Shown: one piece after another, positions 1 to 62,700 of the stretch
Position numbering within the stretch: position 1 is the stretch's first letter
How the letters are laid out: the number at the start of each line of letters is the position of its first letter
Source of the DNA: Thalia democratica
Lineage: Eukaryota
DNA: 64,000 bases
Assembly: GCA_965202585.1 (NCBI GenBank)
Contig: OZ241830.1
Coordinates: 59,148,001 to 59,212,000, forward strand
Direction of reading: 5' to 3'
Made by a program: the position numbers and the translations under genes
Notes under the pieces: model-generated
What the model saw: the letters and a program-made list of their open reading frames with translations, nothing else
Told to the model about the DNA's origin: nothing
Databases searched by the model: none

Positions 1-79
1 TAACTTTTTAGTACTACATATCTTGTACAAAAATCTAAGACAAAATTCATTCAAAAACATCTTTATTAAAGCAACAAAC

Positions 80-117
80 AAGTAAAATCGATTTCGGCTA
101 ACGCTTTTCAATTACTT
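80..117 (-). ncRNA. Minimal type-I hammerhead-ribozyme-like motif (U3-A8 core variant), PLE1 left arm
   Basis: Exact reverse complement of 3648-3685. Confidence 0.6.
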
Positions 118-337
118 TAGTTAGCAACTAATTTTAAGATTAAATTTTGAGTATATAAATAGTTAGAGGTTACATCAGAAAAATCAATTAACACTAATTA
201 GCATAATTGAGCAAAATTAATCAGACATTCACTATTCATAAATGCATATATAAAAACAGTTTATCAGTAATTTAACTAAGACAAACAACATTAAAATAAA
301 AATAAAATAAAAATAAGCGACAAAATTCAAATAAAAT

Positions 338-1828
338 CTATAACAACTTATAAAGATTAGATTTATAAACGTATTGTTGCTTACACAATTTAGGTTTACA
401 TGTTTTTATAAATAGAGATTCTAAAACACTAAGGTGATAATCGTTACGAGCTTTACTTAAAATTGAAAAGTTACTATCACTATAGTTCTTTGCGCAATCT
501 GAATTGTTTAATAAGTGTTCAGCTATCGCTGATGATCTATTAGATGGTTTTTTTAAACCAGTGTCCATCCATCTTCTGAGGGAATTAAAAATGTGTTGGT
601 CCCTTCTAATATGGAATCTTTGAGACGTTCTGCCAATGTACTCACTGTCACAGTGGCACTTGTACATATAAATAATTTTGCTTTTTTCCTGATCGGCAGT
701 ACGGTCTTTGCAAATTCCATTTAAGGGCTTTCTTGTAGCATGACTGATTCTTAGTTGTACAGAGTTAAAAGTGGAGTTTACAGTGTATTTTACAGTCTTT
801 TCTAGAGCAGATGCTACTTTACCGAGATATGGCAATCTCAAATATACAGGGCATTTTCTAGGACCAAATTTAACCGGTTTTTCAAATTTTGTGATTGTAT
901 TGTTAATTGTCTTTCTGACTATATGCGATGGATAACCAAGAGCTTCAAAAATATTCTTTATTTTATCTAATTCCTCTTCAAACAACTTTTTCGAGCAAAT
1001 CTTGTGTGCTCTGAATACCAAACAAGAGATTAAACCGAGTTTTTGAGATAAAGGGCAGAATGACTGAAATGGAATATATTGACCAGCAAATGTAGGTTTT
1101 CTGTACACAGTGGTAAGCAACTCGGAAGATGTACGCAACAGATGTACATCCAAGAAAGGTAAGCAATTGTCTTTTTCTTTTTCAATAGTAAATTTTAAAT
1201 TTGGGTGTAAATTCGAAATTTTGCTAAATAATTCATCAATGTTATATTCATCATTGTAAGACACAAAAATGTCGTCAACATACCTAATATAGTTTATTGG
1301 TTTTTGATACTTGGAAAAGAGCAATGTTTCAAAGTATCCCACAAAAATGTTGGCTAAAATAGGGCCAAGTGGACTACCCATCGCTACTCCATCTATCTGT
1401 TTATAAATATAAGAATTAAATCTGAATTCAACATTTTTTACTGCCATGTTTAACATACTAAGACAAACATCTTTTGGAATAGAAGGAGCTGTAAGACCAG
1501 AATTGTAAAGTTCATTTAGACATATATTTATAGTTTCATCCACTGGGACATTAGTAAAGAGGCTTTTTATGTCAAAAGAACACATGTTACTTGGTAAAAA
1601 AGCATTTTTTCTTATGACTTCAACGAATGAGAAAGAGTCTTTTATACAGAAAGTGGAATACTTACTGGAAACTGGTTCGAGGATTTTGATTAGAAGCTTT
1701 GAAATTTTATATTGTGCAGAGCTACTCATATCTAAAATAGGTCTTGTTGGAACACCGTCTTTGTGAGTTTTAGGTAGTCCGTACAGTTTCGGACACTGAG
1801 AACCTGAAGGTCTAATAGACTCATACAA
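338..1828 (-). CDS. PLE polyprotein, C-terminal part: reverse transcriptase plus GIY-YIG endonuclease (5'-truncated, frame open)
   Basis: PLE RT motifs PKLYGLPKTHK..PTRPI, SFDIKSLFTNVP, YKQIDGVAMGSPLGP, RYVDDIF, LPFLDV, VYRKPT. The C-terminal GIY-YIG domain reads IIYMYKCHC..YIGRT..R..H, SAIAEHL, LESLFI..KPKL. The frame continues to the palindrome centre (AFQLKLRGWYAKGYISKDL), so the TTG start in the ORF track is not a real start. Confidence 0.92.
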   Translation of the reverse strand: MYESIRPSGSQCPKLYGLPKTHKDGVPTRPILDMSSSAQYKISKLLIKILEPVSSKYSTFCIKDSFSFVEVIRKNAFLPSNMCSFDIKSLFTNVPVDETINICLNELYNSGLTAPSIPKDVCLSMLNMAVKNVEFRFNSYIYKQIDGVAMGSPLGPILANIFVGYFETLLFSKYQKPINYIRYVDDIFVSYNDEYNIDELFSKISNLHPNLKFTIEKEKDNCLPFLDVHLLRTSSELLTTVYRKPTFAGQYIPFQSFCPLSQKLGLISCLVFRAHKICSKKLFEEELDKIKNIFEALGYPSHIVRKTINNTITKFEKPVKFGPRKCPVYLRLPYLGKVASALEKTVKYTVNSTFNSVQLRISHATRKPLNGICKDRTADQEKSKIIYMYKCHCDSEYIGRTSQRFHIRRDQHIFNSLRRWMDTGLKKPSNRSSAIAEHLLNNSDCAKNYSDSNFSILSKARNDYHLSVLESLFIKTCKPKLCKQQYVYKSNLYKLL

Positions 1829-1882
1829 ATCCTTAGAAATATAACCTTTGGCATACCAACCTCTGAGCTTAAGTTGAAAAGC

Positions 1883-3427
1883 TTTTCAACTTAAGCTCAG
1901 AGGTTGGTATGCCAAAGGTTATATTTCTAAGGATTTGTATGAGTCTATTAGACCTTCAGGTTCTCAGTGTCCGAAACTGTACGGACTACCTAAAACTCAC
2001 AAAGACGGTGTTCCAACAAGACCTATTTTAGATATGAGTAGCTCTGCACAATATAAAATTTCAAAGCTTCTAATCAAAATCCTCGAACCAGTTTCCAGTA
2101 AGTATTCCACTTTCTGTGATAAAGACTCTTTCTCATTCGTTGAAGTCATAAGAAAAAATGCTTTTTTACCAAGTAACATGTGTTCTTTTGACATAAAAAG
2201 CCTCTTTACTAATGTCCCAGTGGATGAAACTATAAATATATGTCTAAATGAACTTTACAATTCTGGTCTTACAGCTCCTTCTATTCCAAAAGATGTTTGT
2301 CTTAGTATGTTAAACATGGCAGTAAAAAATGTTGAATTCAGATTTAATTCTTATATTTATAAACAGATAGATGGAGTAGCGATGGGTAGTCCACTTGGCC
2401 CTATTTTAGCCAACATTTTTGTGGGATACTTTGAAACATTGCTCTTTTCCAAGTATCAAAAACCAATAAACTATATTAGGTATGTTGACGACATTTTTGT
2501 GTCTTACAATGATGAATATAACATTGATGAATTATTTAGCAAAATTTCGAATTTACACCCAAATTTAAAATTTACTATTGAAAAAGAAAAAGACAATTGC
2601 TTACCTTTCTTGGATGTACATCTGTTGCGTACATCTTCCGAGTTGCTTACCACTGTGTACAGAAAACCTACATTTGCTGGTCAATATATTCCATTTCAGT
2701 CATTCTGCCCTTTATCTCAAAAACTCGGTTTAATCTCTTGTTTGGTATTCAGAGCACACAAGATTTGCTCGAAAAAGTTGTTTGAAGAGGAATTAGATAA
2801 AATAAAGAATATTTTTGAAGCTCTTGGTTATCCATCGCATATAGTCAGAAAGACAATTAACAATACAATCACAAAATTTGAAAAACCGGTTAAATTTGGT
2901 CCTAGAAAATGCCCTGTATATTTGAGATTGCCATATCTCGGTAAAGTAGCATCTGCTCTAGAAAAGACTGTAAAATACACTGTAAACTCCACTTTTAACT
3001 CTGTACAACTAAGAATCAGTCATGCTACAAGAAAGCCCTTAAATGGAATTTGCAAAGACCGTACTGCCGATCAGGAAAAAAGCAAAATTATTTATATGTA
3101 CAAGTGCCACTGTGACAGTGAGTACATTGGCAGAACGTCTCAAAGATTCCATATTAGAAGGGACCAACACATTTTTAATTCCCTCAGAAGATGGATGGAC
3201 ACTGGTTTAAAAAAAAACCATCTAATAGATCATCAGCGATAGCTGAACACTTATTAAACAATTCAGATTGCGCAAAGAACTATAGTGATAGTAACTTTTC
3301 AATTTTAAGTAAAGCTCGTAACGATTATCACCTTAGTGTTTTAGAATCTCTATTTATAAAAACATGTAAACCTAAATTGTGTAAGCAACAATACGTTTAT
3401 AAATCTAATCTTTATAAGTTGTTATAG
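1883..3427 (+). pseudogene. Mirror copy of the PLE RT-GIY-YIG ORF, frameshifted in an A9 run (3209-3217)
   Basis: ORFs 1935-3242 and 3191-3427 together equal the 496-aa minus-strand protein. A9 instead of A7 shifts the frame, which may be a homopolymer consensus error. Confidence 0.9.
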
Positions 3428-3647
3428 ATTTTATTTGAATTTTGTCGCTTATTTTTATTTTATTTTTATTTTAATGTTGTTTGTCTTAGTTAAATTACTG
3501 ATAAACTGTTTTTATATATGCATTTATGAATAGTGAATGTCTGATTAATTTTGCTCAATTATGCTAATTAGTGTTAATTGATTTTTCTGATGTAACCTCT
3601 AACTATTTATATACTCAAAATTTAATCTTAAAATTAGTTGCTAACTA

Positions 3648-3685
3648 AAGTAATTGAAAAGCGTTAGCCGAAATCGATTTTACTT
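3648..3685 (+). ncRNA. Minimal type-I hammerhead-ribozyme-like motif (U3-A8 core variant), PLE1 right arm
   Basis: AAGTAA-TTGAAAA-GCGTTAGCC-GAAA-TCGA-T-T-TTACTT. It has a perfect 6-bp stem I (AAGTAA/TTACTT), core UUGAAAA in place of CUGANGA, a minimal G-C-closed stem II, GAAA and a palindromic stem III (AAATCGATTT). PLE 3' regions are known to carry minimal hammerheads. Confidence 0.6.
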
Positions 3686-3742
3686 GTTTGTTGCTTTAAT
3701 AAAGATGTTTTTGAATGAATTTTGTCTTAGATTTTTGTACAA

Positions 3743-6700
3743 TTATATGAAAGCATTACTTATATACTACAAGATACTTTTCAAAGTGAAAAATAAATTA
3801 TTAGCATTGAAATATCAGTACTGTGTAAAAGTTTTCACAAATAGTTGAACTGAGCATAAATAATTTTTTAGGTTGTTTTAAAAAATTACAACATGCAAGC
3901 CACAAATTATAGTGAATGGACTGTGGATCAGCTTAAACGCCTTGATATAAATGCTTTATCTGAAGTTGAGAAGCTCAAGTTAAAAAACAGCAGACCAACA
4001 CCAGATATTTCAATTACCCAAGAGTGTACATCAAGAGGTTTGAAGTTTATTTTATGACTAAGCTAAAATTTTGAACTATATGAAAAAATTTAATTATTAT
4101 TTATATATGTGTTTGTTACTTTAAAAAGAAAATATATTATGAGGAAAAAGTTATGATGTTTACAAAGATTATTGCAGTTTTAGTTTAACTAAAATATTAG
4201 CTCTATAAATTAAAGTCTTAGAGCTAGCGTATATTTGAAACATTGTTTCATCCTAATATTTTCTTAGCTGAGATTTTACTAAAGGAGAAATTTTTAGAGG
4301 TTTTTTATATATATACTTTTCAGGTATTTATAGTTTTATCAATGTCAGTTTTTGTAACAACTTTAGCACTCAAATAATGAGAATAAAGAGTTTTTTTTAT
4401 TAATAGAGTGTGTAAATTTATTTTAATTTTCTAAAAAAAAGATATTTTTTTTAATGGTTTTACAGTCATGTTTTTTGTCAATGTCAGATTTTTGTGTTAA
4501 AAAGGTAAGCCTTTCAAGAGAAAGTTCAGCAATGAATATTACAACAAGCACCAATGGCTTTGCGCATGTAAACAGTCCATGGCCCTATACTGTTTTCCGT
4601 GTATTCTGTTTGGAGGTGAAGATGCTTGGACAAAAACTGGTTTTAGAAACTTGTCCAAAATTGCTGCAAGATCTCTATCTCATGCCAAATCTTCCAAGCA
4701 TTTGGACAACATTGTGTCTTTCAACTTCCTAGGTAAAAGTTGCATCCAAATTTATCTAAGTAAAAGTTACCAGGATAGCATTGAAAAACATAATGAAGAA
4801 GTGAGAAAAAACAGAAAAGTACTGAATATTTTAATTGACAGTGTACTTTTTTGTGGCCAACAAGAAATTGCGTTAAGAGGCCACAATGAAACTGAAAATT
4901 CCTTAAATCCTGGTGGCTTTAGGTCTTTGCTTAGATATGCCAGCAAACTAGATAAAGACCTTGAAGGTCATTTAGAAAAAAGCAAAGCATTTTTAGGAGT
5001 GTCTGCCACATTCCAAAATGAGATTCTAGAATGTGTTTTGAAAGTCTATAGAAAAGAAGTTGTCTCACAAGTAGAACAAGCACATTTTATAGCAGTCATT
5101 GCAGACGAGACAACTGATATAGTGTCCAAAATCAGCTTTCAATTGTTGTTAGATACACACACCAAGGAAACGTTGTGGAAAGATTTTGGGGTTTTTTTAG
5201 ACCTAAAAGAGCTAATGCTGATGGTATTTCTGAAGTAATTTTGACTGAGCTAGCCAACATTTTTCAAGGAAATAAAAAGAAATTAATTGCCCAGACGTAT
5301 GATGGTGCATCAGTGATAAAGGGACGAATTGGAGGAGTTCATGTCAAGGTGAAAGAAGTATACCCCAACGCACATTATGTACATTGTGCTGCTCACCAAA
5401 AAAATTTGGTTTTATCAAGAGCTGGCAGTTGCAACAATGAAGCAAGGCTCTTCTTTGCAAAACTTGATCAAATTCCAAACTTTTTTTCCAAATCGCCAGA
5501 GAGAAAACAAGCCATTGAAGTCTCTGTTCCTTCAGGCTCCAGAACACGATGGAATTATAGCTCAAGAACAGTATGCAAAGTTGCCATGAACTTAGATGAA
5601 TTACTCAATGGATTTAAATCAATTGTTAATTCTTCAGATTGCTACGGTTTGCCAACAATTTCTGCTGCTTCAAACTGCATCAAAACTTTAGAAGACAATA
5701 AATTTCTTTTTTGGCTTAATGTATTTGCTGCATTAATGCCTGAAGTAGAAATTTTATACAAGGTAATGCAGAGCACCAGTTTGACAGTTAAAAAGGCAGA
5801 GGACCATATTCGCAATTTTAAAAATTCAGTTGCTAGAATTCGGAACTCAACTATAACAGATCATGAGTCTGTAAACCTCTCTGCTGCTACAAAAGAGGTT
5901 TGCGACAGTGTAAATCTAAATGTGGCAGAAAGGTTCAAGTTTTCTGGCCACTTGCGAATTGCTCAGTTATTTGACGAAAAAAAGTTCAACGCGTACATAT
6001 CTACATTTCCATCAAATTTGGTTGAAGAAGTGAAAACATACTATCCAGAGGTAGAGTCGAAAATATTAGTTAATGAGTTAAATACTTTTTATAAACGAAA
6101 AGAAATGCACAAGTGCGGTCTTGTTAAAATTTTAGCTGACTTGAAAGAAAACAACTTGGATAAATCTTTCACTGAAATCACAAAGCTGTTGAACATACTG
6201 ATAGCAATACCAATGTGTTCAACAGAGGCAGAAAGATCATTTTCAGCTCTAAAAAGAATTAAGACTTACCTAAGAAACACTATGGGCCAGACAAGACTTA
6301 ATTCTTTAAGTGTATTATCAACTGGTCGAGATTTAGTTAGTGAATGTGATGGTTTTAATTCGAAGGTAATAGAAATGTTTGTTGAGAAAAAAGAAAGAAG
6401 GATGCATTTTACTTATAAAGGTAAAAAATAATTTTCTGATTATCATTAACAGAGAGTACATAATTAAGCTTATTTTGTTTTGTGTTTTTAACTTTTAATA
6501 TTTTTAGTTTGCAAATAGTAAACTACTAAAAATATTTTACTTTATTTTTAATTCGCTGTACTGAATGCTACTTTTGACTAAACTTTATATTTTATTTCTT
6601 TTCAGATACATTATATGTTTTTAGTTAGTATTTCATTAATTAGATGTTAATGTTTATAGGTTATTTTAAAACTTTAGTTTTGTTAGTCAACAAATTGTGA

Positions 6701-8420: not shown

Positions 8421-9332
8421 AGTTAATTTTATAGGAAAATTTATTAATTTTTCAAAAACATAAAACTTTAATGTTAATTATTTTCCTTATCTTAAAAGCC
8501 ATCTAAAAAGTTTTTTATTTTATTTTAGAGAACGCACCTTTGTCTTTGATTTGAAAAAAAAATTTGGTTTGGGGTTGGAATTATTTCAAGGGGTCCCTCC
8601 AAAAATTAAAGGTTTTTTTGTTATTTTTTAATTCTTTTGTTTTTTAACCAAAAATAAATATTTATTTTTTATTTTTTTCCCTTATTTTGCATGTTATTTA
8701 AACTGTTAAATGTTTATTTTATAAACAATGTTAATATCTTTTACGATTTGGCCCAAAAGAAAAATGATGTATATTACACTATCATTTGCCTTGGCCATTT
8801 TTTAGATAAAAAAATTTATAAAAGGAAAAAAAAATTAATAAGATTGTGAATTACAACAAACTAAATTAAACTAAAATAATTTAATTAAATTTGTTGTAAT
8901 TCACATTCTTATTAATTTTTTTTCCTTTTATCAATTTTTTATCTAGGAAATGACCAAGGCAAATAATAGTGTAATATACATCATTTTGCTTTGGGGCCAA
9001 ATCGTAAAAAAGATTAACATTATTTTTAAAATAAACATTTAAGAGTTTAAATAATATGCAAAATAAGGGTAAATAAAAAAAAATAAAAAAAAATATTTAT
9101 TTTTGGTTCAAAAACAAAAAAATTGAAAAATAACAAAAAAAACCTTTATTTTTGGAGGGACCCCTTGAAATAATTCCAACCCCAAACCAAATTTTTTTTT
9201 AAAATCAAAGACAAAGGTGCGTTCTCTAAAATAAATAAAAAATTGTTAGATAGCTTTTAAAATAAGGAAAATAATTGACTTTTAAGTTTTATGTTTTTTG
9301 AAAAATTAATAAATTTTCCTATAAAATTAACT
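8421..9332. mobile_element. Fold-back element, about 910 bp, long imperfect inverted arms
   Basis: agttaattttataggaaaa...gagaacgcacctttg...ggggtccctccaaaa is mirrored by ...ggagggacccc...caaaggtgcgttctc...ttttcctataaaattaact; centre near 8870. Direct repeat actgcaatta at 8401-8410 and 9330-9339. Confidence 0.8.
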
Positions 9333-9734: not shown

Positions 9735-9926
9735 TTGAAACTAGTAGTTATTTCTACTTGAATTAAAGCTTTATTGGTTTTAATATAAATTATTTTAACA
9801 ATTGAGGATTTTTGTTCAAAAATGTTAAATTCCAAATATTGTCCTGAATTCTAAGAGTCCTGGTAAAATAGGTACCCTGAAACTTGGTTGTTACTTTTTT
9901 ACAAAACTGCTACTCTTTTAGCAATA
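9735..9926 (+). repeat. 192-bp segment duplicated identically at 11803-11994
   Basis: Read base by base: ttgaaactagtagtt...ctcttttagcaata is the same in both places. Confidence 0.9.
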
Positions 9927-11508: not shown

Positions 11509-13408
11509 TGGGTTACATGACAATTAAAATTACGACAATTCAAACTCCTTTAATTCAAATTCGGACAATTCAAATTTCGACAACTCAAATTCGGACAATT
11601 CAAACTACAACAATTCAAATTCTTACAACTCAAATTCGGACGATTTAAATTTCGACAGTTAAAACAAGGACAATCCAAATTCCGACATATTAAATTCAAA
11701 AATGAAAATCCGACAATTAAAATTCTGACAGTCCTAATTCCAACATTTCAAACTTTGAAAATTAGTTAAATAAAATAAATAAACTAAATTATATCTCGAT
11801 AATTGAAACTAGTAGTTATTTCTACTTGAATTAAAGCTTTATTGGTTTTAATATAAATTATTTTAACAATTGAGGATTTTTGTTCAAAAATGTTAAATTC
11901 CAAATATTGTCCTGAATTCTAAGAGTCCTGGTAAAATAGGTACCCTGAAACTTGGTTGTTACTTTTTTACAAAACTGCTACTCTTTTAGCAATATAATAG
12001 TTCGAACAATTTAAATTCTAACAACTTAAACTCCGAAATTTTAAACTCGAAAATTTTGATTTTGACTAAATTTCGAATAAAGCGTTAAACTAAAATTAAA
12101 AATACTTCGTTGTAATTTAAGATAATAATATTTATAAACTTTAAATTTGCCCATATTTTTTATTTGGAGATAATTACAACGACAAAATTTAATATCACTA
12201 AAATCATAATAATACAAAAGTAATAAGTTATTAAGTAACTGTGGTTTTTTTATTAACAATAATTGTTCGACTGATAATGATTTGTATATTTTTTCTATAA
12301 TGAAAGTTATACTGTTAAATTACAGAATTGAATTTAAATTGATATTATTTTAGGTAAAACCACAATAAAAAAAAACTATAAAAAAAAAGGATTTCTAGCA
12401 GTTTGGAAACTTTATAATAAAAAGTTATGAATATAAAACATAGTACTTACTTAATGAAAAGTTTTATATCATTAAAATAATACAAACATTTTCTGTTAAA
12501 AATACAATAAAAATACTGTATTGTAATAATCGTTTTAGTTTTTGCAATCTGAACTCGGGTCTTGGTCTTGTCACCTTGACTCGGTCCTCAACTTATTCCT
12601 ATTGACTACATTGCATAAGTCTAGTTAGACTATTGAATCTTATTTTAATCAGTTTATTTCTAATTTATAATATGTATGTAGTAGATATAAGGCTTTGTTT
12701 AGCAGTTTATTGTCAAGTGATGCTTTAATAATTTTCAATGTTAAATCAAAAAATTAGCTTAATAAAAAACGGTAATAACTAATTTTTATTTTTATGGTAT
12801 TTAATTTAAATAAGTTAATCTATAGAACTACGCTTTAAAAATAGTCAAATTAGTTTATACCATTACATGAAAAACTAAATGTTATTTTTTAATCGTTTTA
12901 TGCTAATAATATTTTATATACTTCCTAAAAATATTGTACATGTTTTTTAAAACTACTAATTTTTTATGTCTAAAATTATTAACAGTTTTTTAAACATTTT
13001 CTTAATAGTCTTCTATTTCTATAAGATAATTTAACTTCTAATAATTTATTTATTTATTATTAAGCAAAATTTATTTTTAAGACAACAAAAAAACGATCTA
13101 TAAAAATTTTAATATCTCAAATCTAAAAAGCAAAGTTTGATAAAAGTTATAACTTTCGTTATATTACTTATTGAAAGATTTATCTAAATTTTAATCATCT
13201 TATTCAAAAATTTCAATTGTCGCATTTGAATTGTCGTTGTTTGAATTGTCCGAATTTAAGTTGTCGGAATTTGAATTGTCCAAATTTAGATTTTCGTAGT
13301 TTGAATTGTCCGAGTTTGGATTGTCAAAATTTAAATTTTTTGTATTTTAATTGTCCGAATTAGAATTTTCGAGTTTGAGTTGTCAGAATTTAAATAGTCG
13401 TGCACCCA
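11509..13408. mobile_element. Non-autonomous TIR element with subterminal arrays of a roughly 11-bp unit (aattcggacaa-like) in inverted orientation, containing extra inserted DNA
   Basis: Ends TGGGTTACATGACAATT... and ...TAGTCGTGCACCCA. Unit arrays at 11520-11760 and 11995-12060 and, inverted, at 13210-13400. The same family occurs at 29893-30260. Confidence 0.65.
11803..11994 (+). repeat. Second copy of the 192-bp segment, embedded in the repeat array of the 11.5-13.4 kb element
   Basis: Identical to 9735-9926 and flanked on both sides by degenerate array units. Confidence 0.9.
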
Positions 13409-18109: not shown

Positions 18110-18477
18110 TTTGGAAACACAAAGTCACTCAAACATTAACTTTAAGTTTCAACTTGTTTATTTACTTTACATCTAGCAACCCACTCAAAAAATCTACAAC
18201 TTAAGTTGCATTTTTGCTGAGTCAGCAAGACTTTTTAATAATATTTTCATGTTATTTTAAGTTTATTTATAAAAGCACGTTTAGTTGTAATACTTTGGGT
18301 AAGGTGGGTTAGGTATATAAAAGATATATTAACTAATATTTTTTTTTGACTTTTGCCGCTTCAGCATTTGCAAGTTAATTTGCAGATTTTTTGAGTGGGT
18401 TGCCAGAAATAAAGTAAATAAACAAGTTGAAACTAAAACTAAAAAATTATGTTCGAGTGATTTTGTGAGTCCAAACG
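18110..18477. repeat. Short inverted-repeat (MITE-like) element
   Basis: aaagtcactcaaacat...tagcaacccactcaaaaaatct is mirrored by agattttttgagtgggttgcca...atgttcgagtgattttgtg. Ends approximate. Confidence 0.6.
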
Positions 18478-18647
18478 ATTTACTTGCACTGGGTACTACT
18501 AAGTATTTGTTAAAGAGGAAACTTTATATAGGTGAATTCAAAATTCGGTTTTTTTTATTGTGTTTTTTTCAAACTAACTTTAAAGTAACGTTTTTCAAAT
18601 TAATATTTATTATAAATTTAACAACAGGTCCAAACATCTACAGATAT

Positions 18648-21900: not shown

Positions 21901-23943
21901 AATTAATTAAAGATTAAAATTATTTTGTAACAAAATTCCAATTCAAATGTATAGACTGCAACTTTTTGTCATTTTTTGTAAAGTTTATATATTAACTAAA
22001 ATTTTTACCAAATACTATTTTTTGATCTAGAGAACTCAAGTTTTGATGAAAAATGTTTTAAGCTGTTTAAATTAAGTTATATGTTAGAATTATTTTTATA
22101 TTAGAAAAGCATAAATTAAACAAAAAAGGTAATGTTTTAATGATTTTTGTTTATTTTGAATTAAAAAGTTTCCCGTGAGATTAGCAACAAAATAGTTGTA
22201 AAAGCTTAAAAAGGCTGGTTAGAAATAAAGGAAAATACAGACTTCTAGTGAAACATTTTTTTGCCTTTGCAAATTCTTAGTATGGAGCCATTTAAACTCA
22301 CCCACTTTGATCCCTTCTATCTCAAAAATTACTTTGAACTTTATTCTTTACAAAGCATGAAATAATTCTTTGCAAACCAGATTCTTAAATAAAAAGTTTA
22401 TATTTAATTATATAATTTAGTTTATATTTAGTTGTTTTCGTGGCTATACTATGCTTAATAACTTTAATTTTTTTTTCTAAAAATGATTAACAATTAATAA
22501 AAATAATGAATATGCTTTAAAGATATATAGGTCTTCTAGCTGATATTATTTTAAAATTTCAGTTTAATCCTGACAAAAAGATTCATAAATAAAAAGATAA
22601 AAAAAACTTCACTAAAGTTGCATAAATCTATCTTCTATATTAATATTTTTTTAAACTTAACTAAGTTTTTGGCTAATTATTTTTTTGATGATTTTTAAGA
22701 ACTTACACAACTTTAGAAAAACATGAGATTTTATTTTGTGATTTTTGTTACCAATTAAAATAATACTTAAAAAAATCAGTGTTCCAAATTTCTTAAGCTA
22801 CTTAAGAATTGCTTTTGGTAATGAAATAACTTGAGTAAAAACTGACTTTGAAAGTTAATTAAAACTTTTATATTCAATGAATGGTGACTTAGTATTACTT
22901 ATAGCTCTCATGTAACATCCTACGTTAATTTTTGTAACAAATAAAAAAATATTTCACTTGATGGTTCGATACAATATTGTATATAAAAAAATATTATTTT
23001 GGCTGTTAATAATTCCAAAAACAGTAGTTTTATATTTTAACTAAAATTAAATATTTTTGTATATGATCAATATTTGACTTTTTAACTAAATTAGAGTTTA
23101 CCAAAGTGGGCTGTATGGTCCTCTTGTGGGCCATAAGCAGCAAAGGGGCCAAAGGGTGGCCTTGAGTAGTAAAGTGAGCCATGAGGCCATAATCAAAAAC
23201 TTAAACTAGGTATTCTGAAGTTGATGATTAAAAGGAAAACAAAAAAGATCTTAGGCGTATTGAATGGTAGTTTTCTGAAAAATCTTGTCAGTGGGGGTCA
23301 TAGCTTTTGTTTTTTCTTCAAAAGATGGTCTTATGAAAAAAGGTTTGGGAAACTTTGAGTTAGATATTAGTTAGAGTTTAAGAGTACTTGCTATTAAATT
23401 AGGTTTAATTTTTAATGGATTGAAACCAGAAAATTTTACATTTTTTGTAACTTAAATATTTACAAAGTGACTTATACTTGCCTAATACTTTTAACTTCTT
23501 TCTTAAAAAGTTTTAAATTTTTTGTTATAAGCAATTTATATAGTGACTTTTACTTGTTCTAGGCTTTTAACTTTTTTCTTTAATTAAAGCTTTTATTAAT
23601 ATGCATTATGGTGCTTATAAATATAGCAAACTTTGAGTTTTCAGTTAAATTTTTTACATAAAGCAATAATTACATAAGCCCACTATGGACAATTTAAGAC
23701 AACTTTAAAAAAGTTTTAAGAATACATTTCTTGAATTTTTAACAAAAAAACTGGAAATTGAATAAAACCTCAAAAAAGTGATTAAAAGTACATAAAATTT
23801 AGGTCCTATACAATTTGCTCTAGGATGGTTTTCAGAAAAATAAATTTTGCCAAGGTAAAAATTTCTACAACTCATCTAAGATTTTGCTCATTTTGTTTTT
23901 GTGTTATCTGCATTAGGTAAAATATTTCCAACTAAATAATTAA

Positions 23944-24692
23944 GGGCATAGGGGGGGGTAAACACCCTTTTTTGGTTTTTTATTTTACATAGTCTTTACT
24001 AAGCTAGAAGATGCTTTTTACAGATTTAGAAAATTCAAAATATTTTTTGAGATATAGCCGGTGGTCAAAGTCGGAGGCAACAATAGGATCCTTATGGGAG
24101 GCGCAAACTAAAACGGCAAATAACTAGAAATCACCAAAAATCTATCTCCTACGTTTTTTGAGATAACTACCTCAAATTTTCAGGAAATGTTCCTTGCAGT
24201 ATTTAGAAAATTCTGTCGGAACAGAATTTAAAAAAATCAAAAAATAATTTTGCAACAAAAAAACTGTTTCTTTTGTTAATTTTTTATTTACAATTTTTAT
24301 TTTTTAATTTTTAATAAAATATTTATTGAATAAAAAAAAATATATAAAAAAAACTTTTTTTTTTGTTTGTTTTTTATATAAAATTTTAATTTTTTAATTT
24401 GTTAAAAATTCCTTTTGACAGAACTTTCTAAATATATCAAGGAACATGTCCTGAAAATTTGAGGTAGTTATCTCAAAAAGGTAGGAGAAGATAGATATTT
24501 AGTGAAATAGTCTATTTTTGCTGTTTTAGTTTGCGCCTCCCATAAGGAACCTTTTGTTGCCTCCAACTTTGACCGGCTATATCTTAAAAAATATTTTGAA
24601 GTTTTTAAATCTGTAAAGAGCAACTTGTAGCTTAGTAAAAACTACATAAAATAAGATCAAGCAAAAAAGGGGTGTTTAACCCCCCTATGCCC
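23944..24692. mobile_element. Fold-back non-autonomous DNA transposon with TTAA target duplication and GGG termini (Kolobok- or Sola3-like)
   Basis: TTAA|GGGCATAGGGGGGG...CCCCCCTATGCCC|TTAA, with inverted arms of about 350 bp. TTAA plus purine termini argues against piggyBac, which has CC termini. Confidence 0.8.
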
Positions 24693-27340: not shown

Positions 27341-27540
27341 TAAACTTACATTATTTAGGATTAATTAAAATTGTGTTTTATTTTGTATCCGTTTTTCAAA
27401 CCACTTGTTAATTTAAAGTTTTTCTTACCTTAAAGTGTGGTTTTATTGTGTTAAATGTTTTTTTAAACATTCTATGTTATTAGCTTATTTATTTAAATGC
27501 ATAACAGTTATATAAAACACTCTCCCAAGTTTTTCTGTGA

Positions 27541-27579
27541 TAGTTTAATACGTATTTCACTACTTTTCGTCAGAACCTA
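27541..27579 (-). ncRNA. Minimal hammerhead-ribozyme-like motif, PLE2 left arm
   Basis: The minus strand reads TAGGTT-CTGACGA-AAAGTAGT-GAAA-TACGTA-T-T-AAACTA: canonical CUGANGA and GAAA boxes, A-U closed stem II, palindromic stem III, and 5 of 6 bp in stem I. Confidence 0.65.
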
Positions 27580-29015: not shown

Positions 29016-29054
29016 TAGGTTCTGACGAAAAGTAGCGAAATACGTATTAAACTA
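29016..29054 (+). ncRNA. Minimal hammerhead-ribozyme-like motif, PLE2 right arm
   Basis: TAGGTT-CTGACGA-AAAGTAGC-GAAA-TACGTA-T-T-AAACTA. The stem II closing pair is mismatched (A-C) in this copy. Confidence 0.6.
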
Positions 29055-51162: not shown

Positions 51163-51688
51163 CATGGTTGCCACTGATCAAGCTGAGTAAAATTTCCTGA
51201 CTTTTCCTGACTTTTTCCTGACTTTTTACCAAAATTTTCCTGACTTTTTTAAATCAAAATCTTAAATTAAACTTATTCTAAAATACATAATCTAACACTT
51301 GGAACTATATAAAGCTGTTCAATATGTTAATAGAAAAATGTTTCAGTTTTAAAAGTATATTTTACTAATTTATACCAGATGAAGGCACTAAAAATTAAAT
51401 CTAAAAGAATTGTAAATTTCTAGGAAAATTTTGGAACTTTTTTCTGACTTTAAAGGACTTTTAATTAATTTTAACCATTTGAAGGCTTTGGAAAACAAGG
51501 CATTTTGTAAATTTAAACTGACAAAATCTGACTTTTTTTCTTTTTTTTTTATCAAATTTCCTGACTTTTCCTGACTTTTTTTCAAAACCCCCCATTTTTT
51601 CCTGACTTTTCCTGACTTTTGTAATTTTTCTAAATTTTTCCTGACTTTTCCTGATTTCCTGACTTTTCCTGACCAAGTGGCAACCCTG
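51163..51688. mobile_element. MITE, 526 bp, 12-bp TIR CAGGGTTGCCAC, subterminal (cctgactttt)n, 6-bp TSD GTATTT
   Basis: GTATTT|CATGGTTGCCAC...GTGGCAACCCTG|GTATTT. Confidence 0.88.
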
Positions 51689-53787: not shown

Positions 53788-56700
53788 TTAAACAAATCCG
53801 AGATCCATAACTTTTAACGAGCTTTTTCCTTTTGAGTTTAATGTTGTTGCTGAAATTAACAAAAACAAATTACTACATCTAGTTTAACTTTCAAAGTTTA
53901 TATTTTAGCATTAACTTAATTTCTTCAAACTATGTACACACATTCTAAAGATAAATTAATTTTAGTTAATAAAAAACTGTTTTTTTATCTTAAGTTGTAT
54001 TACAATTAAAAAAAAAACTTTTAAAAAAATGTAAAACATAAAACAGTAGATAGGAAAAGATATATTTCAAAACTATTATAATTTTTTAAAAATCTAAAAA
54101 TAGATGCATAATCTTCCAAATAGCCTCAAGTTTAGTAGCATAAATACAATTAAAAACTTACTAGAAGCTGAAAAGTTTTCATCTTTTAACTGTTTGCCCA
54201 ACTCAATTTCGAGATAATCATTATCATCATCATCTTCTTGTATGTTCAAATTTTTCCACAATTCTTCATTATCATCATCTAAATTGCTTTCTTTTTCTAC
54301 AATTTATTAACTTTTTATTCAAACAACTGAAAATACAACTTTATATGAATAAAAACAACTAGCTGCTATTTTTTTAAACAATTTTTCACTGCAGTTTGTA
54401 ATTCAAAAACATATATATATTATATCCACTTTGAAAAGGTAGGTTAAAGTAAGATATTTTTTTTGTCGATCGACTTTTTAAGGTTTTTTGAGAGTAAACG
54501 GATAGCTAATTTTTAAACCTTATGTACTTGTTTATTAAGTTATAGTAAAGTTAAATCACAAAAATATTAAAACTTTAGAGTTTTAGAAATTCTACTATTA
54601 AATTTTTACTAAAAATGATAAAAAATTGAGAAAACATTGATTTTAAAAACGGACAAAAGAAAGTTTCGAAAACTACATGAGTATTAGGTTTTACTGAATG
54701 ATTTAAATGTTTAGTCATACACTCTATGACAAAAGTTTTCACTTTTATAAGTGATTTTTTTTTTGAATAAAATTCTTAAGTAATAAAAAAAAAAGAAACT
54801 AACCTCTTAGTTCTTCCGATTTTGTTTTGGCGAATTGAGCAATTTGATCGTCTCCGCAATCGGTGGCAGCAAAATAAATATCGTTATACAACTCCCATGA
54901 ACCAATGTCTTTGGCAAGTAGTAACGCTTTTTCAAGTCTGTTATGACGTAACAAATGGTGGAAGAAGCGCCTCAGATAGCTGAAACAAGATTGTTTTTTT
55001 ATTTATTTGAGAATAAAGGAAACATATACAAAACTAGTTTTATCATTTCTTATCAAAAGCTAAGTTTTCATAAACGTAGGAAATATTCATTTAATTGAAG
55101 TTTAGTAAAATCATTATAAATTTGAATGGAAAATTTTATAAAATCTAGGAAACGTATATTAATATTACAAAAATGCATTTAAATTAAATCGCCTAATACT
55201 TGTAGAAACATATAATAACTGAAGTCTGCCAGTTGTAGTTTTAAACTTTAAACAATTTCGGTTATGGACATAAAACCAACGTTAAACAAACCAATTCAAA
55301 TTGTAACGATGTTTTACCACAATCTCATCATTGATTGGTATCGAAGGGGAGTAAAAGCATGCAAATGTTTGTTCCAAATACTCTAAATTAAACATACATG
55401 TTAAATGTGTAAGTTTTTGACTTAAATAATTTATTGTGAGCAAAAACTTAAAGTAATAAATAAAAACCTTCGGTGTCAAAAGCCATAGGGACTTCCTTCA
55501 ACAGTTCATCAGCAATCATTACTAATATGTGGCAGGCAACATTACCACTCAAGTTCCAGTTTAATGACTTTAAAACATCTATCGCTTCTTTAGCCTGAGT
55601 TTGCAAAAAAAAAACACTAAAGTTAAGTATTCTAAATTTTAACAGTTATAAAACTTTAAAGATCTATGAAGTTATAATAACACTTATTTTTTACAACTAA
55701 ACTAAGTAACATTTACATACCATAGTTTTTTTTTTTAACATTTGCACACAAAACAAAACTTGATCTTATATATCAAAGTATTCTCCGAACCAATTGACAC
55801 TAAAACGTGAAACCAACTTTAAATTGATCAAGGTACATGCGCACTAGTCTTTCATTGGTGAGTTTTCCATGAAGCCGCAGAGATGCGAGCGGGCCTCCGT
55901 TGAAATGCAGCAAGACCGTGCTATGAAGCGAACTCGAATTAATCAAGGTCATATCGGATAGCCCATTGCCGTTCGCTATATTCTCATACAACTGTTTGAA
56001 GTTGAAGTTATGTTGAACTAGTTACAAAGCATTCTCACTAAGAAGCTGTATTGAAATTAATTTTAACAGGATTTTTACAGTTTACTATCAAATAAGTAAA
56101 ATCTTACAAAAATCATCAGGTATACGATACACTTAAATATATTAACCAAGTAATCAAATAATCATAAAGTAATCATCAGATTAATAAACGACAAAAGTAA
56201 TTAGTAACAGTTAAAAACATTTAAATTTATTTACGTTATAATTGATCTACAGTAAAACTAAACATAAATAAAATGAAAACAATCCTTATAAAGTAGTACG
56301 AAAATAAAGAAACAGTATAGTCAAAATCTTTTTGCTTACATAAACAGGATTGCCACAGATCAAGCTGAGAAATATTTCCTGACTTTTTCCTGACTTGTTA
56401 CTAAGATTTTCCTGACTTTTCTAAATATTTCTCTTTATTTAAACTTACTTTAAAATACATGATCAAACACTTAAAACTATATAGAACTTTAAATCTTATA
56501 TTTAGAAAGGTTAAAACAACAGTTTTTTTTGCTGAATTCAATCATCTAACTTCCATTACATCAATTGAACTATCTACATACCTCTTTTATAACTTATTTT
56601 ACAAATTTAAACAACTTTGGAAAAAATACAAAGAGGTAAAGTATACACATCAACTTGTTACATAAAAAACTAAGCTAACTGCTTAATTATAAAGAACTCA

Positions 56701-59700
56701 ATTATTTACTTAAACAAAAAAAACTTTGTTACTAAAATTATGATGGATAAACTTTTGTGTTCATAGCACAGTATCACTATGGAAGTGTTCTTACTACAGA
56801 TCATCAATACTAAAAAGCTTACAAAAACTGCTTGTTCAAGCAGGGTACTTGTTCAAATATAAAAGAAAAATTTTGCAGTATTATAATGGATATTTTATTA
56901 ATTAATAGATGAAGGCAATTGGAAATTAAACATTGTAAATTGTAAATTTTTCGGAAACTTTTGCAATTTTTATCTGACTTTAAAGGACCTTAATAATTTT
57001 TTTACCATTTAAAGCAGGGTTTCCCAAACTCGTTTACTAAATCGCCCCCTTTTCAGAAATTTGAAAAACAATCGCCCCCTACGATTTTACAAAGTAGTTT
57101 TTTTTTTTGAGTACAAACTTTTGAGCCAAAAACTTATGTTTAAAATGTAATTTAGTCTGGTACTTTTTTTGCACGCAGATTATTAAGATAAAACAAAAAA
57201 TAGTTGTATTAACAGTTTAAAATTCCTTAATATATAGATTTTTTAACAATAATAAAAAGTTAGAAAACAAAATTGAGTTTAAGAATCTTTTAAATGAAAA
57301 ATTTGAAGTCATTACAAATAGAGACCTCAAATCTATACTCTTTTAAAACCAAAAAAAAATGTTTTGAAATAAAAAATTTATTAGCTATCAAGATTTTTTT
57401 AATTTATACAGATTAATCAAGTAATAAAAAAAATATGTCAAATAAATTTCAAACTAATAAATACTTTAATCACTATACTATAAAAACTTTTAGTGTAATG
57501 TAAAACGACAAATATAAACTACAAAACTAACCAAGTCAAAATAAAACTATTAACAGATTTAAAACATAAACCATTTAATAAATACAGTAGACTTCCGCTT
57601 GAGTTCGCACTTTGAACAAAATCAAAAAGGGCAAACTCAAAAATTATTACTTTTTTTTTTACAAAATGAAAAATTTAAATATGTTATATGCAATAACATT
57701 ATGTATAAACATGAAATCAACTAAAAAATAAAACAAACATTCATTGAAAAAACTAAATCTATATAAGCAATTAATATTATGTATTTTTTTTTGTTTTATC
57801 GATACTTAGTTAGTAATAGACTTTATTTAAGTTTAATTAAAAAAATATAAACGTGCACTTTTTTTGGGTAAAAAGTGCAAACTTAAGAGGAAGTCTACCG
57901 TAATTAGTATTTATTAGGCATTATGCATACCTGTTGTAGAATAAATAACTTAAAAAAATGTTTTTTAGAAAAAGACTACTTAAATACAATACAAACCAGG
58001 TTAAAAAAGATGTGTTTTAAAAGGTCAAATAAAATAAATAAAACTTTCATAAAATAATGTCTGCTACTGAAGTCTAATATAATGTGAAGGATGAGGTTTA
58101 TGACTGCTTGCAAGTTTTTCTAATCTAATTCTTAATTAGTAAAATAAAGCCTCCTTTACAAACATTTATATTAGATCTTTTGCTCAAGATTTTGATAACT
58201 GAACTGAAAGCTTTCTCAACAACATAGCTAAAAGGAAAAACTATAAACAACAATCTAATTTTTTCAAATGATTTGATACTTTTGCTTTAGTTTTTGTTGA
58301 GTCCAAAAGCATTCATATCGTTCTTTGGAAAAATTTACTTTTAGTTTAAGGTCAGTTTGTAAGTCTGAGAAGAATTATTGTAAGTCGTTTAGTCCAAAAA
58401 GATCTGCTTCGGAGGAGTCCATACTTTTATCTATATAATAGCTTTTTTGTGTCAAATCGAAACTTTACTAGTTAATATGTTCACACTGCTATAAATATTT
58501 GATTTTTTAGGTTTTTTTTTTGACTAAATTGTCAAAATCCAGGTTTTTCCAGGTTTCAAGGTAAATTGGCAACCCCGTAAAGATTTTTTCTTAGTCTGAC
58601 TTTTCAAAAATAAGTTGGAAATATCTTGAAGTGATATTTAATAATAGATCACGTAGATTTTTACAAACCATTTATGATTTCAAATAACATACAAATATGT
58701 CAGGTTATAAAATGGTGAGAGGGATTCCGATTGTCTCTGATTTGTGTAATTGTTTAATAAGAAATATATTAATGAAAATATGTAACTTACTTAAAAGTAG
58801 GAGTCATAAGTACTTGATCTTTTTCTCTACATTTTACATAAACGAAATAAACTTTTTTGTTTAAGTTGTACCTTAGGGTCAAATATTTAAGCAAGTTAAA
58901 ATTAGTAAAATAGCAAGCTAAAATTAGTAAAATAGCTAGACAAAAAGTAAAAATTTTATGACTGCCCAAAATTTTAAAATCGCCCCCTTTTCGCCCCCTT
59001 ACTAATTATCGCCCACCCTTTCGCCCACTTACTAATTATCGCCCCCCGATTTATTAAAATCGCCCCCAGGGGGGCGATATCGCCCACTTTGGGAAACCCT
59101 GATTTAAAGGCTTTAGAAAATGAGGAATTTTGTAAATTTAAACTGACTAAATCTGACTTTTTTTTTTAATTTTGTCAAATTTCCTGACTTTTCCAGACTT
59201 TTGTCACTTTTTAAGTTTTTCCTGACTTTTCCTGATTTCCTGACTTTTCCTGACCTTGTGGCAACCCTGCATAAAACAGGTTTCCTTAACAAAATACAAA
59301 TGGCTTCTAATTCAATTAAATCGAAAACATTACTACAAGTTTTAATAATTTTAAATCTATTTAGATTATAACTGTTTGCACAAGTTGAATTATTAACCAA
59401 ATGTTCTGCAACCCTAGAATTGTCTTCACTTCTAAACCACTATTTACAACAGGTGGTAAGGATCCAGTATCAAACTTAAATAGAAGTATGGTAATCTACC
59501 AATACAGCTGCTGTTGTAAAGCACCTGTATTGGACTAACAATAAGACATCAAGGAAAACAATAAAAGAGCATGTACCAAAGAGTGTAGAGAATTTTAGCT
59601 TTTCAGATAAGAAAGACGATACACCGGTCAAAGTTTTAAATGCATCTAAACGTTCATCTATAGCAGAACATTTGGTTAATATTCAACTTGTGTTAATCTT

Positions 59701-62700
59701 GTAGTTATAATCTAAATATACTTAAAATTACTAAAACTTGTAGTAATGTTTTTAATTTAACGAAATTATAAGCCATTTTTATTTTGTTAAGGAAACCTGA
59801 TTTATGTAAGCAAAACGATTTTGACTATACTGTTTCTTTATTTTCGTAATACTTTATAAGGATTGTTTTCATTTTATTTATGTTTAGTTTTATTGTAGAT
59901 CAATCATAACGTAAGTAAACTTAAATAATTTTAACTGTTACTAATTGTTTTTGTCGTTTATTAATTAGTTGATTACTTGGTTACTATGCAAGTTTGTAAA
60001 ATCTTATTACTTGTTACCTTTGTACTCTATTGATGAGAATTGCTCGAAATGTATTTAGTTTTATTGAAATTGTGTGTCTTTTATTTCTTGTTGTATAATT
60101 ACTGGTCACTTTTGTTTCAATATTTGAATATAATATTAACACGAAATCATGATATAATTATTAATAATCATCAATTAAGAACTTATAAATACTTTTAAAC
60201 TAAAACTTAATAGTACGAAATCAATACAATAGCTTTCTATATAATTTTGAAGCACCTATAAAAAAGTATTACAAAACTTTACGTAATAAATTAGAAACTG
60301 GCAATGCCTAAATTCATGTTGATTCATTTAGTAATTTATTGTTTATAGAAATCGTTTGATTTAAACTTATCAATCTTATTGTCTGAAGTTCAAGAACTTA
60401 ATAGATAAAAATTAGCATCTACCATTTAAGTGAAGTTTGAAAAAGTTTGGTAATCATATAACAAACATTTATACTGTATTAAAACCTATCGAGATAAGTA
60501 TATCATTATTAAAAGTACGTTTTACAAACTAGTAACAATGTTGATTTGTAAACACAAGTTAATCACAAACATTGATTTCTTCTGTACTGCTTCCATGAAA
60601 GTCAGTGAAATTAACTCTGTTCAAGGCAGCATCGAATATAGAAATTTCACCTTTTCCACTCGCCACCAATACACAGTCTTCCAACCACAAAAGCTGAAAG
60701 TACCTTGTTACTAATATTGTGTGTTGAGTAAATCAATTCTATTTAGGATTTTAAGATTTAAACATCAATTTCCCATTACTAAATTATCACAAAACAACTT
60801 GTAATTTCACAAAAGTATCATACAATATATTAGTTGATGTCAAACAAGTTTGTATCAATTACATATCTTTTGTTATTAACATTTAGGAATTCAAGTTATT
60901 TATAACTTACTAGAAAAAATATATACACATTTACTGGTACAAAGAACTATTTATTAGATCAGTTAAAACTTATATTAACTTTAAAAAAATTATGTTTGTC
61001 TTTATTTTTTATTTTTTCAATTCTTTTGAAGAACTGTGTTTTTTATGTGTGATGTTTAAACATAAATAGGGCTACAGCTTTAAAACAAAACAGCAAAAAG
61101 AAAACCTTGTTAGGAACTAGTGACTTAATTTTAGCACTAATCAAAGGTTGCACATCATCACAAACAATTGTTACGTCATATATCAATAACTTTCCATCAC
61201 TGCAGCCGACTACCACCTTTGTATTATCTCTAGAAAAAATATTATTAGTGTAATTAATGGTTTTGACAAATTTAGTTTGTTTTAGTAGTTAAATAATTCT
61301 GCTTTTTAAAAGTCTATTTTATTTAGTTGCCAAATAATATTTAAGTAAAGTATATTTTATTTAAAAATAGTGAATAACTTATTAATGCAAGCAGATATTA
61401 CTCCGGAATAAACTTCGCCATTTGGCAATTTCAATTTTTTCACGCTCAGTCTACTTATTTGCAAATTTGACGTTATCTCATACATAACGTAACTCAACAG
61501 ATGTTCACAAGAACTTTTATTTCTTGGTCGTTCGAGTGTCAAAAACTGTTTAGTATTTAATTTCAGTTTGACAAAAAAAACTATGTTGTTTTTGATCAAT
61601 TAAAAACTTATTCTGTAGTTAAAAATTATTATTATTATTATTCATCGAAGACAATATTTGTCTGTAAACAGAACAATTTGACTAAAACTTTTTTATTCAG
61701 TTTTTGACTGAACATTTTAATTTTGAATGAAACTCGATAAAACAAGTCCAAGAAGAAACTTAAATCAAAAATGTAGTTTAAAAAATCAATTTTAAGATTT
61801 TTTAAAGGTAACCCAAGCGAAAATTCATCAATACACTAATATTACAACCATGAATTTCAAAAAAAAAATTAAAACATATCAAATTATAAACTTTTAAATA
61901 CAGTAATTAAAGTTTAAATACACAGAAGAAAAAACTTGATAAGGCTGTTTAAAAGTTAATTAGACAGGTATCCTAAATTAAAAAATATAATTGATTAGAC
62001 TTTTATTGAATGTTATTTCAAAAGAAATAGTCAAAGAAGAAACTAATAAATAATTTTCTAAAACTATAATCATAAATTGTAAACATTTCATACATTTTTT
62101 TACCGTTCATTTAAAAAATATTTATAAAGAGAGAATTTTTTATGATTACTTATTTTACATTTTCCAGTTTTTTTAAAGTAAAATTTTCATACTTTTACTG
62201 TTTTTAATATTTCATTCTTGCATACAAAACATTTAAGTTAAAAATCAAACTTAAAATAAAGATGCGTTAAATCTAAAAAAACTGTGTTCACTTACTATAT
62301 TTTTTTGAGAATCATCAAAATGCAGATAAAACAACTCTTCTGCAGTTAACAATGTAGACATTACGTCAAACCTAAAATTTATAAACATTTTTTTTATCTT
62401 CAAAAATAAAAATTGATCTTTCAATTACTTTTTCACAACAAAAATTTGGAGTAGAATAAAATAACACAAGATTTGGTATTAAAAAGATAAAGCAAACCTG
62501 AAGTTAGTGCAGTCTATCAGCACGACATTAACTTGATCTTGTTTTGATATATTCTGTAAAAGTCTGCCCAGCTTCCACCAGCAAATTAATAAATCATTTG
62601 TTTTGTTATAAACAAGTCTTCTGTTAAGCTCCTTTGAAACTGGACCTATTTGATTTGAAAGATTTACTAAAATATTACTTTAGTTTTTTTCTAACTAAGA

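Follow-up and report, generated by a model that had tools for sequence, protein, structure and literature searches.

The stretch of Thalia democratica DNA analysed here (64,000 bp of contig OZ241830.1, positions 59,148,001 to 59,212,000; hereafter the window) is AT-rich animal DNA of 22-33% G+C, situated 59 Mb into contig C6, which is chromosome-scale, in an assembly of 802 Mb. It holds three inverted structures, at 1-3740, ~27459-29376 and ~56167-60125, each a dimer of 5'-truncated copies of a Penelope-like element (PLE) with the 3' ends outward, and in all three the arms encode PLE protein, as seen by blastn self-comparison and tblastn. When the arms in the window are compared, the three elements, PLE1, PLE2 and PLE3, have no nucleotide similarity to one another, and we therefore treat them as separate families. 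A first-pass annotation had described three head-to-head PLE dimers of three families, and self-comparison, tblastn and the family loci elsewhere in the genome bear this out. Its junction coordinates are correct to within ~20 nt; its outer limits give way to those above, the PLE3 family end lying at ~60125 and not at 60110. The dimers are likely to be ordinary insertions of canonical endonuclease-bearing PLEs, each the product of one integration event.

The PLE1 dimer is a nearly perfect palindrome. Positions 23-3742 match their own inverse at 99.73% over 3722 nt, the two arms (23-1881 and 1882-3742) adjoin without a spacer around a central AGCT, and the sole difference between them is a run of seven as opposed to nine A residues near 548 and 3211. 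Measured on a natural full-length copy of the family (L004:590-3366, 2777 nt), which served as our ruler, both arms are truncated at the same element position, ~910 of 2777. A reverse transcriptase (RT) domain is found on both (Pfam RVT_1, E=2.5e-13 in the 496-aa open reading frame (ORF) and 1.5e-13 in the other arm). A GIY-YIG-type motif, IIYMYKCHCDSEYIGRT...RRDQH...AEHL, is readable in the C-terminus, for which Pfam gives no match at E<=10 in the C-terminal 120 aa; the Atlas clusters nearest to the PLE1 protein (score 0.97) carry HTH_animal, RVT_1 and GIY-YIG. Rfam matches to mir-580 and mir-399 at 1823-1940 were rejected as being merely the centre of the palindrome.

Searched with the PLE1 protein (tblastn), the PLE2 and PLE3 arms give alignments at E values of 2.5e-14 to 1.7e-6. 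In both dimers these lie on opposite strands with the C-termini outward: for PLE2 they span residues 374-493 (minus) and 257-493 (plus), and for PLE3 residues ~429-483 (minus) and 365-441 (plus). The PLE2 arms are 92.2% identical and are separated by a 17-nt filler, the left stopping at 28116 and the right beginning at 28134, and both extend 44 nt past a 'CACAG', beyond the plain inverted repeat. The PLE3 arms, 86-92% identical, meet at 59409/59410 (+/-20 nt). Both dimers carry a later insertion (Table 1). Within the right arm of PLE2 lies a fourth PLE-type repeat with its own 12-bp target-site duplication (TSD), AAACTATCACAG, the first copy at 29049-29060 and the second at 29321-29332, and the left arm of PLE3 is split by a DNA transposon with terminal inverted repeats (TIRs).

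Table 1. Window coordinates of the parts of the three PLE dimers and of the elements nested in them.
Feature	Position	Strand	Description
PLE1 tail	1-22	-	22-nt extension past the short 3' end, left arm only; identical to the opening 22-25 nt of the following unit in tandem copies
PLE1 left arm	23-1881	-	element ~910-2777; ORF 338-1828 (496 aa) with RT domain and GIY-YIG-type C-terminus
PLE1 right arm	1882-3740	+	same truncation point; A9 at ~3208-3216 shifts the frame (ORF 1935-3242, 435 aa); short 3' end, no tail
PLE1 hammerhead-like box	3654-3680	+	UUGAAAA-GCGUUAGCC-GAAA-UCGA-UUU, U3/A8 core variant; mirror copy at 111-85 (-)
PLE1 TSD, right copy	3741-3752		12 bp, AATTATATGAAA
PLE2 left arm	27459-28116	-	residues ~374-493; short end at 27491; diverged ~32-nt tail 27459-27490; box 27573-27547
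PLE2 junction filler	28117-28133		17 nt
PLE2 right arm, main part	28134-29060	+	residues ~257-493; box CUGACGA-N8-GAAA-UACGUAUU at 29022-29048
Nested fourth PLE-type repeat	29061-29332	+	260-nt 3' fragment (29061-29320) and second TSD copy (29321-29332); own box at 29223
PLE2 right arm, last 44 nt	29333-29376	+	reaches the short 3' end; tail absent
PLE3 left arm, distal piece	56167-56344	-	terminal ~130 nt including the box lost or replaced beyond 56167
Nested TIR DNA transposon	56345-59269		2.9 kb, splits the PLE3 left arm, not a PLE; TIR CAGGRTTGCCACA, TSD ~CATAAA
PLE3 left arm, proximal piece	59270-59409	-	reaches the head-to-head junction
PLE3 right arm	59410-60125	+	box UUGAUGA-GAAUUGCUC-GAAA-UGUAUUU at 60030-60056

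That the dimers arose in single integration events follows from TSDs that flank whole dimers. The first-pass annotation had reported no obvious TSD, and this has to be corrected. The 12-bp duplication of PLE1 has its left copy just off the window, directly before position 1 (L002:1467-1478 in the fetched locus), where the order is AAAAATTAGCATTAGA, then AATTATATGAAA, tail and arm; on the right it is arm, AATTATATGAAA and GCATTAC. Six other dimers have duplications of 6-11 bp. In all, a TSD surrounds the whole dimer in three PLE1-family cases (11-12 bp), among them the 11-bp duplications AACTCACTATT (L029) and TATACT(C/T)TATT (L006/L027), and in four PLE2-family cases (~6-10 bp), namely TTAGTAGTT (L043), ATATTGATT (L038), ~TCTTTATTTA (L041) and CTCATA (L056).

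An unfilled allele of the PLE1 site, of the kind the first-pass annotation had proposed to look for, exists in the contigs of two public runs. Among the public contigs placed on 1-4300, those of X16 and X17 carry the 16-nt sequence AAAAATTAGCATTAGA abutting 3741, and AAAAATTAGCATTAGA occurs among all fetched loci solely at L002:1451-1466, to the left of the insertion. Because the unfilled site exists, the PLE1 insertion must be recent and polymorphic. In a marine-metagenome contig of a further run (X1), the right flank of the PLE1 site at 3741 is joined to a different, G+C-rich left sequence, ATACCACGCGACGCCACTGTTAGA; this join might reflect a different haplotype, a relative, or a separate insertion into this position.

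The perfection of PLE1 also invites the explanation that its palindrome is an artefact of assembly or of long-read fold-back, or that replication error or gene conversion created it once the element had inserted. Its arms are indeed 100% identical apart from a homopolymer length, and spacerless, and public short-read contigs do not demonstrably span the centre; they are swamped there by other copies of the family, so that a crossing of the centre is neither confirmed nor refuted. Fold-back at the level of reads would, however, mirror the flanks, and this palindrome stops exactly at the 3' ends of the element, with unrelated unique flanks beyond. The tail on one side only, the 12-bp TSD, the position of the window deep inside a chromosome-scale contig, and the existence of at least six other PLE1-family loci of like design but with unequal arms are further difficulties for this explanation, which we regard as very improbable.

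How often such dimers occur was estimated from a census of the 40 best-scoring candidates per search and of 58 fetched family loci (L003-L030, L032-L060), with natural copies rather than a consensus as references (the PLE2 family was mapped on L050), and with the structures of the PLE3 family and of the fourth repeat judged from coordinate tables alone. For the PLE1 family, the 40 best matches to a query of the last 300 nt fall into 31 loci, with structures checked on fetched loci: 7 head-to-head dimers, 3 tandem forms and 21 single copies. The 28 distinct fetched loci of the PLE2 family comprise 15 head-to-head dimers, no tandems and 13 singles, the second arms ranging from 73 nt to >1.2 kb. 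At least 7 of 39 PLE3-family loci are head-to-head, and the fourth repeat forms at least five (-)(+) pairs. Dimers thus make up ~23%, ~54% and at least 18% of the sampled loci of the PLE1, PLE2 and PLE3 families, respectively. A set of 21 'single' copies was also searched for cryptic mini-arms at the 5' junctions, and the scores fall within the shuffled range, so these singles are genuinely single. Tandem pseudo-long-terminal-repeat (pLTR) forms, in which a 3' fragment is directly followed by the full 2777-nt unit, are found at L004, L008, L023 and L024, and same-strand PLE1-family pairs with spacings of 2777 nt and 2619 nt occur on contigs C6 and C5, respectively. The suggestion that the inverted dimer is the normal integration product therefore goes too far: dimers are frequent, accounting for about a quarter to a half of events, and singles together with tandem pLTR forms are at least as common. 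With dimer rates this high, three dimers in one window are unremarkable across many windows.

One group of PLE1 copies in the census is of a different kind. At 11.87-12.03 Mb of contig C4 (G000:C4, L011-L021), eleven near-identical copies with one shared truncation point lie ~9-18 kb apart; they form a tandem segmental array that carried along one PLE insertion.

The orientation of the arms is invariant. Among more than 30 inverted pairs of the four families, every left arm is (-) and every right arm (+), with no tail-to-tail pair in any family, which is as predicted by priming from both staggered 3'-OH ends of a target. The arms of a dimer are also kin. Arm-to-arm identity exceeds that to the best other copy for the PLE2 dimer of the window (92.2% vs <=89.3%), for L035 (97.8 vs 92.9) and for L027 (99.8 vs 98.3). 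Where divergence is informative, then, the arms are each other's closest relatives, and not the unrelated, independently inserted subfamilies that the first-pass annotation had allowed for; its view of the dimers as integration products, not chance neighbours, is sustained by the TSDs, the empty allele, the kinship of the arms and their strict polarity.

These observations bear directly on the idea of two independent insertions, in which a truncated copy already in place is targeted at its 5' end by a second copy from its own family. PLEs do enter PLE sequence, as the fourth element in the PLE2 right arm with its own 12-bp TSD demonstrates, and nicking of an element's own pLTR has been noted (PMC11167929). 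Two insertions would nevertheless not account for one TSD that encloses the whole dimer with none between the arms, nor for PLE1 arms identical over 1859 nt in a family whose copies differ by 1-3%, nor for old arms that are mutually nearest relatives; strict (-)(+) polarity with zero tail-to-tail pairs would likewise be unexpected. We give this idea hardly any credence.

The nested fourth repeat deserves a comment of its own. Its TSD begins exactly at the predicted hammerhead cleavage position of the PLE2 right arm, right after ATT, and an insertion at this point fits the reported preference for nicking at ATT and the self-targeting of PLE terminal regions. Across the genome, a first look yields at least 454 candidates for its family, which likewise forms (-)(+) pairs.

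The outer ends of the dimers come in two forms, a short end and a long, tailed end. Tails measure 22-25 nt in PLE1-family copies, except for one of 52 nt, ~28-32 nt in PLE2-family copies and ~25 nt in those of PLE3, whose family ends map to window positions ~60098-60101 (short) or ~60121-60129 (long). Both outer ends can be read in 11 dimers, and 10 of these combine a long end, with a tail of 22-32 nt, with an opposite end that is short or truncated. Singles are long in ~50-70% of cases, which by our binomial estimate gives a chance discordance of ~0.45 and, for 10 of 11, P~0.002. Inner ends are mostly unequal among dimers, and at the junctions the arms either overlap by 0-6 nt or are separated by a filler of 1-22 nt, frequently a copy of neighbouring arm sequence, a pattern expected of template switching.

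The 5' truncation points cluster far above a uniform spread, at 900-949 in the PLE1 family (L009, L010, L011 and the window junction 1881/1882) and at 1213-1279 in the PLE2 family (L041, L044, L047, L048, L054, L056 and L060), suggesting that RT stops at these places or that the RNA has its 5' end there.

Such ends and junctions are also the ground on which self-priming has to be considered. According to a hypothesis of Arkhipova et al. (2013; PMC3846280), who take the palindromes found at inverted junctions as a sign of self-priming, one cDNA or an antisense template snaps back and is copied into the second arm. Fold-back of this kind would suit the PLE1 junction, which is perfectly symmetric with AGCT at its centre, the nearly symmetric junction of L041 (1273/1279), the 105-nt inverted stub of L033 that starts at the main arm's start point, and the fillers at L043, L033 and L041, which partly copy the adjacent arm. 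It should, however, reproduce the first outer end as a mirror image, and the ends are unlike in 10 of 11 dimers; the inner ends, too, are unequal in most. The symmetric cases coincide with 5'-truncation hot spots common to single copies: the 910/910 junction of PLE1 sits among family 5' ends at 900, 932 and 949, and that of L041 lies within the PLE2-family cluster. They can be explained by two cDNAs halting at a common block and annealing via a terminal palindrome (AGCT in PLE1). Self-priming on a sense template would moreover yield tail-to-tail pairs (PMC3846280), and none were seen. We therefore consider fold-back unlikely as the general route. Of the two origins that the first-pass annotation had offered, priming at both target ends agrees with the data, while a folded-back cDNA is at odds with the unlike outer ends and mostly unequal inner ends.

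We suggest that a dimer would form as follows. The element protein would nick both target strands 6-12 bp apart, and each free 3'-OH, carrying one copy of the future duplication, would prime reverse transcription on the 3' region of the element RNA. Priming at either of two internal start sites 22-32 nt apart would leave a tail at one end and none at the other. The two minus-strand cDNAs would then grow toward each other until the tip of one switched onto the other, giving rise to the 0-6 nt overlap or to a partly templated filler of 1-22 nt, and a single TSD would in the end enclose two head-to-head, 5'-truncated arms whose 3' ends point outward. If one strand alone were extended, a plain 5'-truncated single copy would result. 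The hammerhead-like box near the end of each arm would be carried along as it sits upstream of the start sites, and would not define the ends. In this scheme the structure, TSDs, empty site, unlike ends, junctions and frequencies are those described above, both-strand nicking and extension and the two start sites are taken from the literature, and the joining by template switch is what we infer.

A number of observations weigh against this interpretation. Both integration and the joining step are deduced from their products; no TSD is recognisable for the old PLE2 and PLE3 copies of the window; and the census sample favours young, long copies. The inverted piece of L033, only 105 nt long, shares its starting point with the main arm and stops before reaching the 3' end; it looks like a snap-back rather than a second priming, and a minor fold-back route may thus exist. 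In vitro, moreover, the two strands show no difference in start site (PMC11167929), which leaves the rule of one long and one short end unexplained.

Twin priming of L1, which Ostertag and Kazazian are said to have described in 2001, offers a first comparison. There the second target 3'-OH reportedly also acts as a primer, and inversions with junction microhomology arise inside one duplication; the second primer is said to anneal internally on the same RNA, giving two non-overlapping segments of which only one has the 3' end. In contrast to L1, both arms of the dimers studied here start at the element 3' end and overlap in content.

A closer parallel is the purified Poseidon PLE protein of Anolis carolinensis (PAc), which cleaves and extends both target strands in vitro (PMC11167929; Frangieh et al. 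2024). Reverse transcription begins there at two neighbouring sites inside the RNA, and the distance between them matches the genomic tail; mutating the hammerhead leaves insertion normal (cleavage is dispensable), and no RNA ends are found at the ribozyme site (PMC11167929). The PAc ends are tens of nt away from the hammerhead site, on its downstream side, as in the families studied here, and the ATT-type cleavage preference of PAc fits the TSDs here that end in ATT. The proposal of the first-pass annotation that both target ends are primed is consistent with this both-strand nicking and extension, as it is with the geometry and the unlike outer ends of the dimers. For PAc no strand difference in start site has been reported, whereas 10 of the 11 dimers analysed here at the sequence level pair a long end with a short one; nor does the PAc paper connect both-strand priming to head-to-head dimers.

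The architecture of the dimers is that of canonical endonuclease-bearing PLEs (Evgen'ev & Arkhipova 2005; Arkhipova et al. 2013, PMC3846280; Craig et al. 2021, PMC8557442, Fig. 2), with frequent 5' truncation, a head-to-head inverted copy, partial-tandem pLTRs, an optional tail at one end, a short TSD, palindromes or fillers at the junction and a hammerhead in the terminal repeat region. In the published cases an inverted 5'-truncated copy with a tail at one end lies inside 8-10-bp duplications around the whole unit (PMC8557442, PMC3846280). The units here differ in some respects: many consist of nothing but the two truncated arms, with neither a full-length copy nor a direct pLTR in between; their tails measure 22-32 nt as against 30-40 bp; and their TSDs are 6-12 bp as against 8-10 bp.

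The first-pass annotation had also placed a hammerhead-like motif near the end of each arm, and this motif is readily found, 44-61 nt inside the intact ends. A box descriptor (YUGANRA-N8/9-GAAA followed by a perfect 8-12-nt palindrome) matches five sites in the window against 0.12 expected, all of them in PLE 3' regions: 3654(+), 111(-), 29022(+), 27573(-) and 29223(+). The box of the PLE3 right arm at 60030 joins this set when one palindrome mismatch is allowed. PLE2 and the nested element have the exact CUGANGA...GAAA core (C3-G8), and PLE1 (U3/A8) and PLE3 (U3/G8) have variants of it. The box is therefore real and common to four families. Its likeness to the minimal PLE hammerheads of Cervera & de la Pena 2014 (PMC4209133), in which paired motifs lie on opposite strands 100-700 bp apart, extends to the type-I layout, the near absence of helix III and a palindromic loop permitting dimers, and the U3-A8 core covariant of those hammerheads is present in PLE1.

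Judged from its sequence, however, the box is not a recognisable ribozyme. The core boxes are separated by 8-9 nt, which allows a helix II of 0-2 bp at most; the published minimal hammerhead ribozymes have 7-8 bp, and the box is thus more reduced than these. Searches of the window, of 1-4200 and of two full-length copies (L004, L022) with the Rfam hammerhead models (Hammerhead_1/3/II/HH9/HH10) gave no match at the gathering threshold or at E<=5-10, and a scan for CUGANGA with a helix II of at least 3 bp has no match in the PLE arms. Four folded boxes are no more stable than shuffled sequence (z -1.5 to +0.8). In most arms of the PLE2 family the box reads GUAA, not GAAA; the two commonest such variants account for 24 of 36 arms and GTAA itself occurs in 33, so that a young, expanding PLE2 lineage has lost the GAAA box. 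The first-pass annotation had the ribozyme setting the RNA end, but the short DNA ends lie 61 nt (PLE1), 56 nt (PLE2) and ~44 nt (PLE3) past the predicted cleavage site and the long ends ~69-88 nt past it. Because the ends sit so far downstream, the ribozyme does not appear to set them, and the want of a proper helix II and the loss of GAAA in the PLE2 lineage speak against it as well.

Closer to the published minimal PLE hammerheads than the boxes of the three dimers are motifs at 46223 (+), 50956 (-) and 52461 (+), of the form CUGAUGA/CUGAAGA...GAAA, with a 5-7-bp helix II closed by a U-U mismatch.

Other repeats are scattered through the window. Four further palindromes, at 8421-9332 (arm identity 90%), 23938-24698 (79%), 18110-18475 (70%) and 29899-30254 (68%), were considered as PLE dimers and rejected, since their ends are TIR-like and the hammerhead-like box is absent; they resemble TIR or miniature inverted-repeat transposable elements, or foldback DNA elements. 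Pieces related to the TIR transposon nested in PLE3 lie in direct orientation at 51168-51688. To the right of the PLE1 dimer, two overlapping ORFs at 4579-6431 (+) carry DUF4371 and a hAT C-terminal dimerisation domain, and thus represent a hAT-type transposase. A 192-bp direct repeat, 100% identical, occupies 9735-9926 and 11803-11994, 2 kb apart.

Every structural feature of the dimers has already been seen in the PLE literature (PMC3846280; PMC8557442, Fig. 2; PMC4209133). What is added here is local and quantitative, namely the dimer frequencies per family, a polymorphic perfect 3.7-kb dimer with its empty site, and the rule of one long and one short end. The window presents three clean PLE insertion scars of differing age, one of them young enough to retain an empty allele, and for annotation it follows that perfect 3-4-kb palindromes like 1-3740 should be masked as PLE dimers and not be taken for hairpin genes or assembly errors. 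With hundreds of young PLE copies of several families, this genome is suited to a quantitative study of PLE integration, in which the frequencies of dimers, singles and tandems, the use of start sites at each end, junction microhomology and truncation hot spots would be useful measures. A bolder possibility, which we raise tentatively and regard as somewhat doubtful, is that both-strand priming is the default for these PLEs, that within one integration complex the two strands use different start sites, giving every dimer one tailed and one untailed end, and that singles are cases in which the second cDNA failed. If true, default asymmetric priming would link the both-strand extension seen in vitro to the long-known head-to-head scars, and would constitute in vivo evidence for an asymmetric dimeric integration complex.

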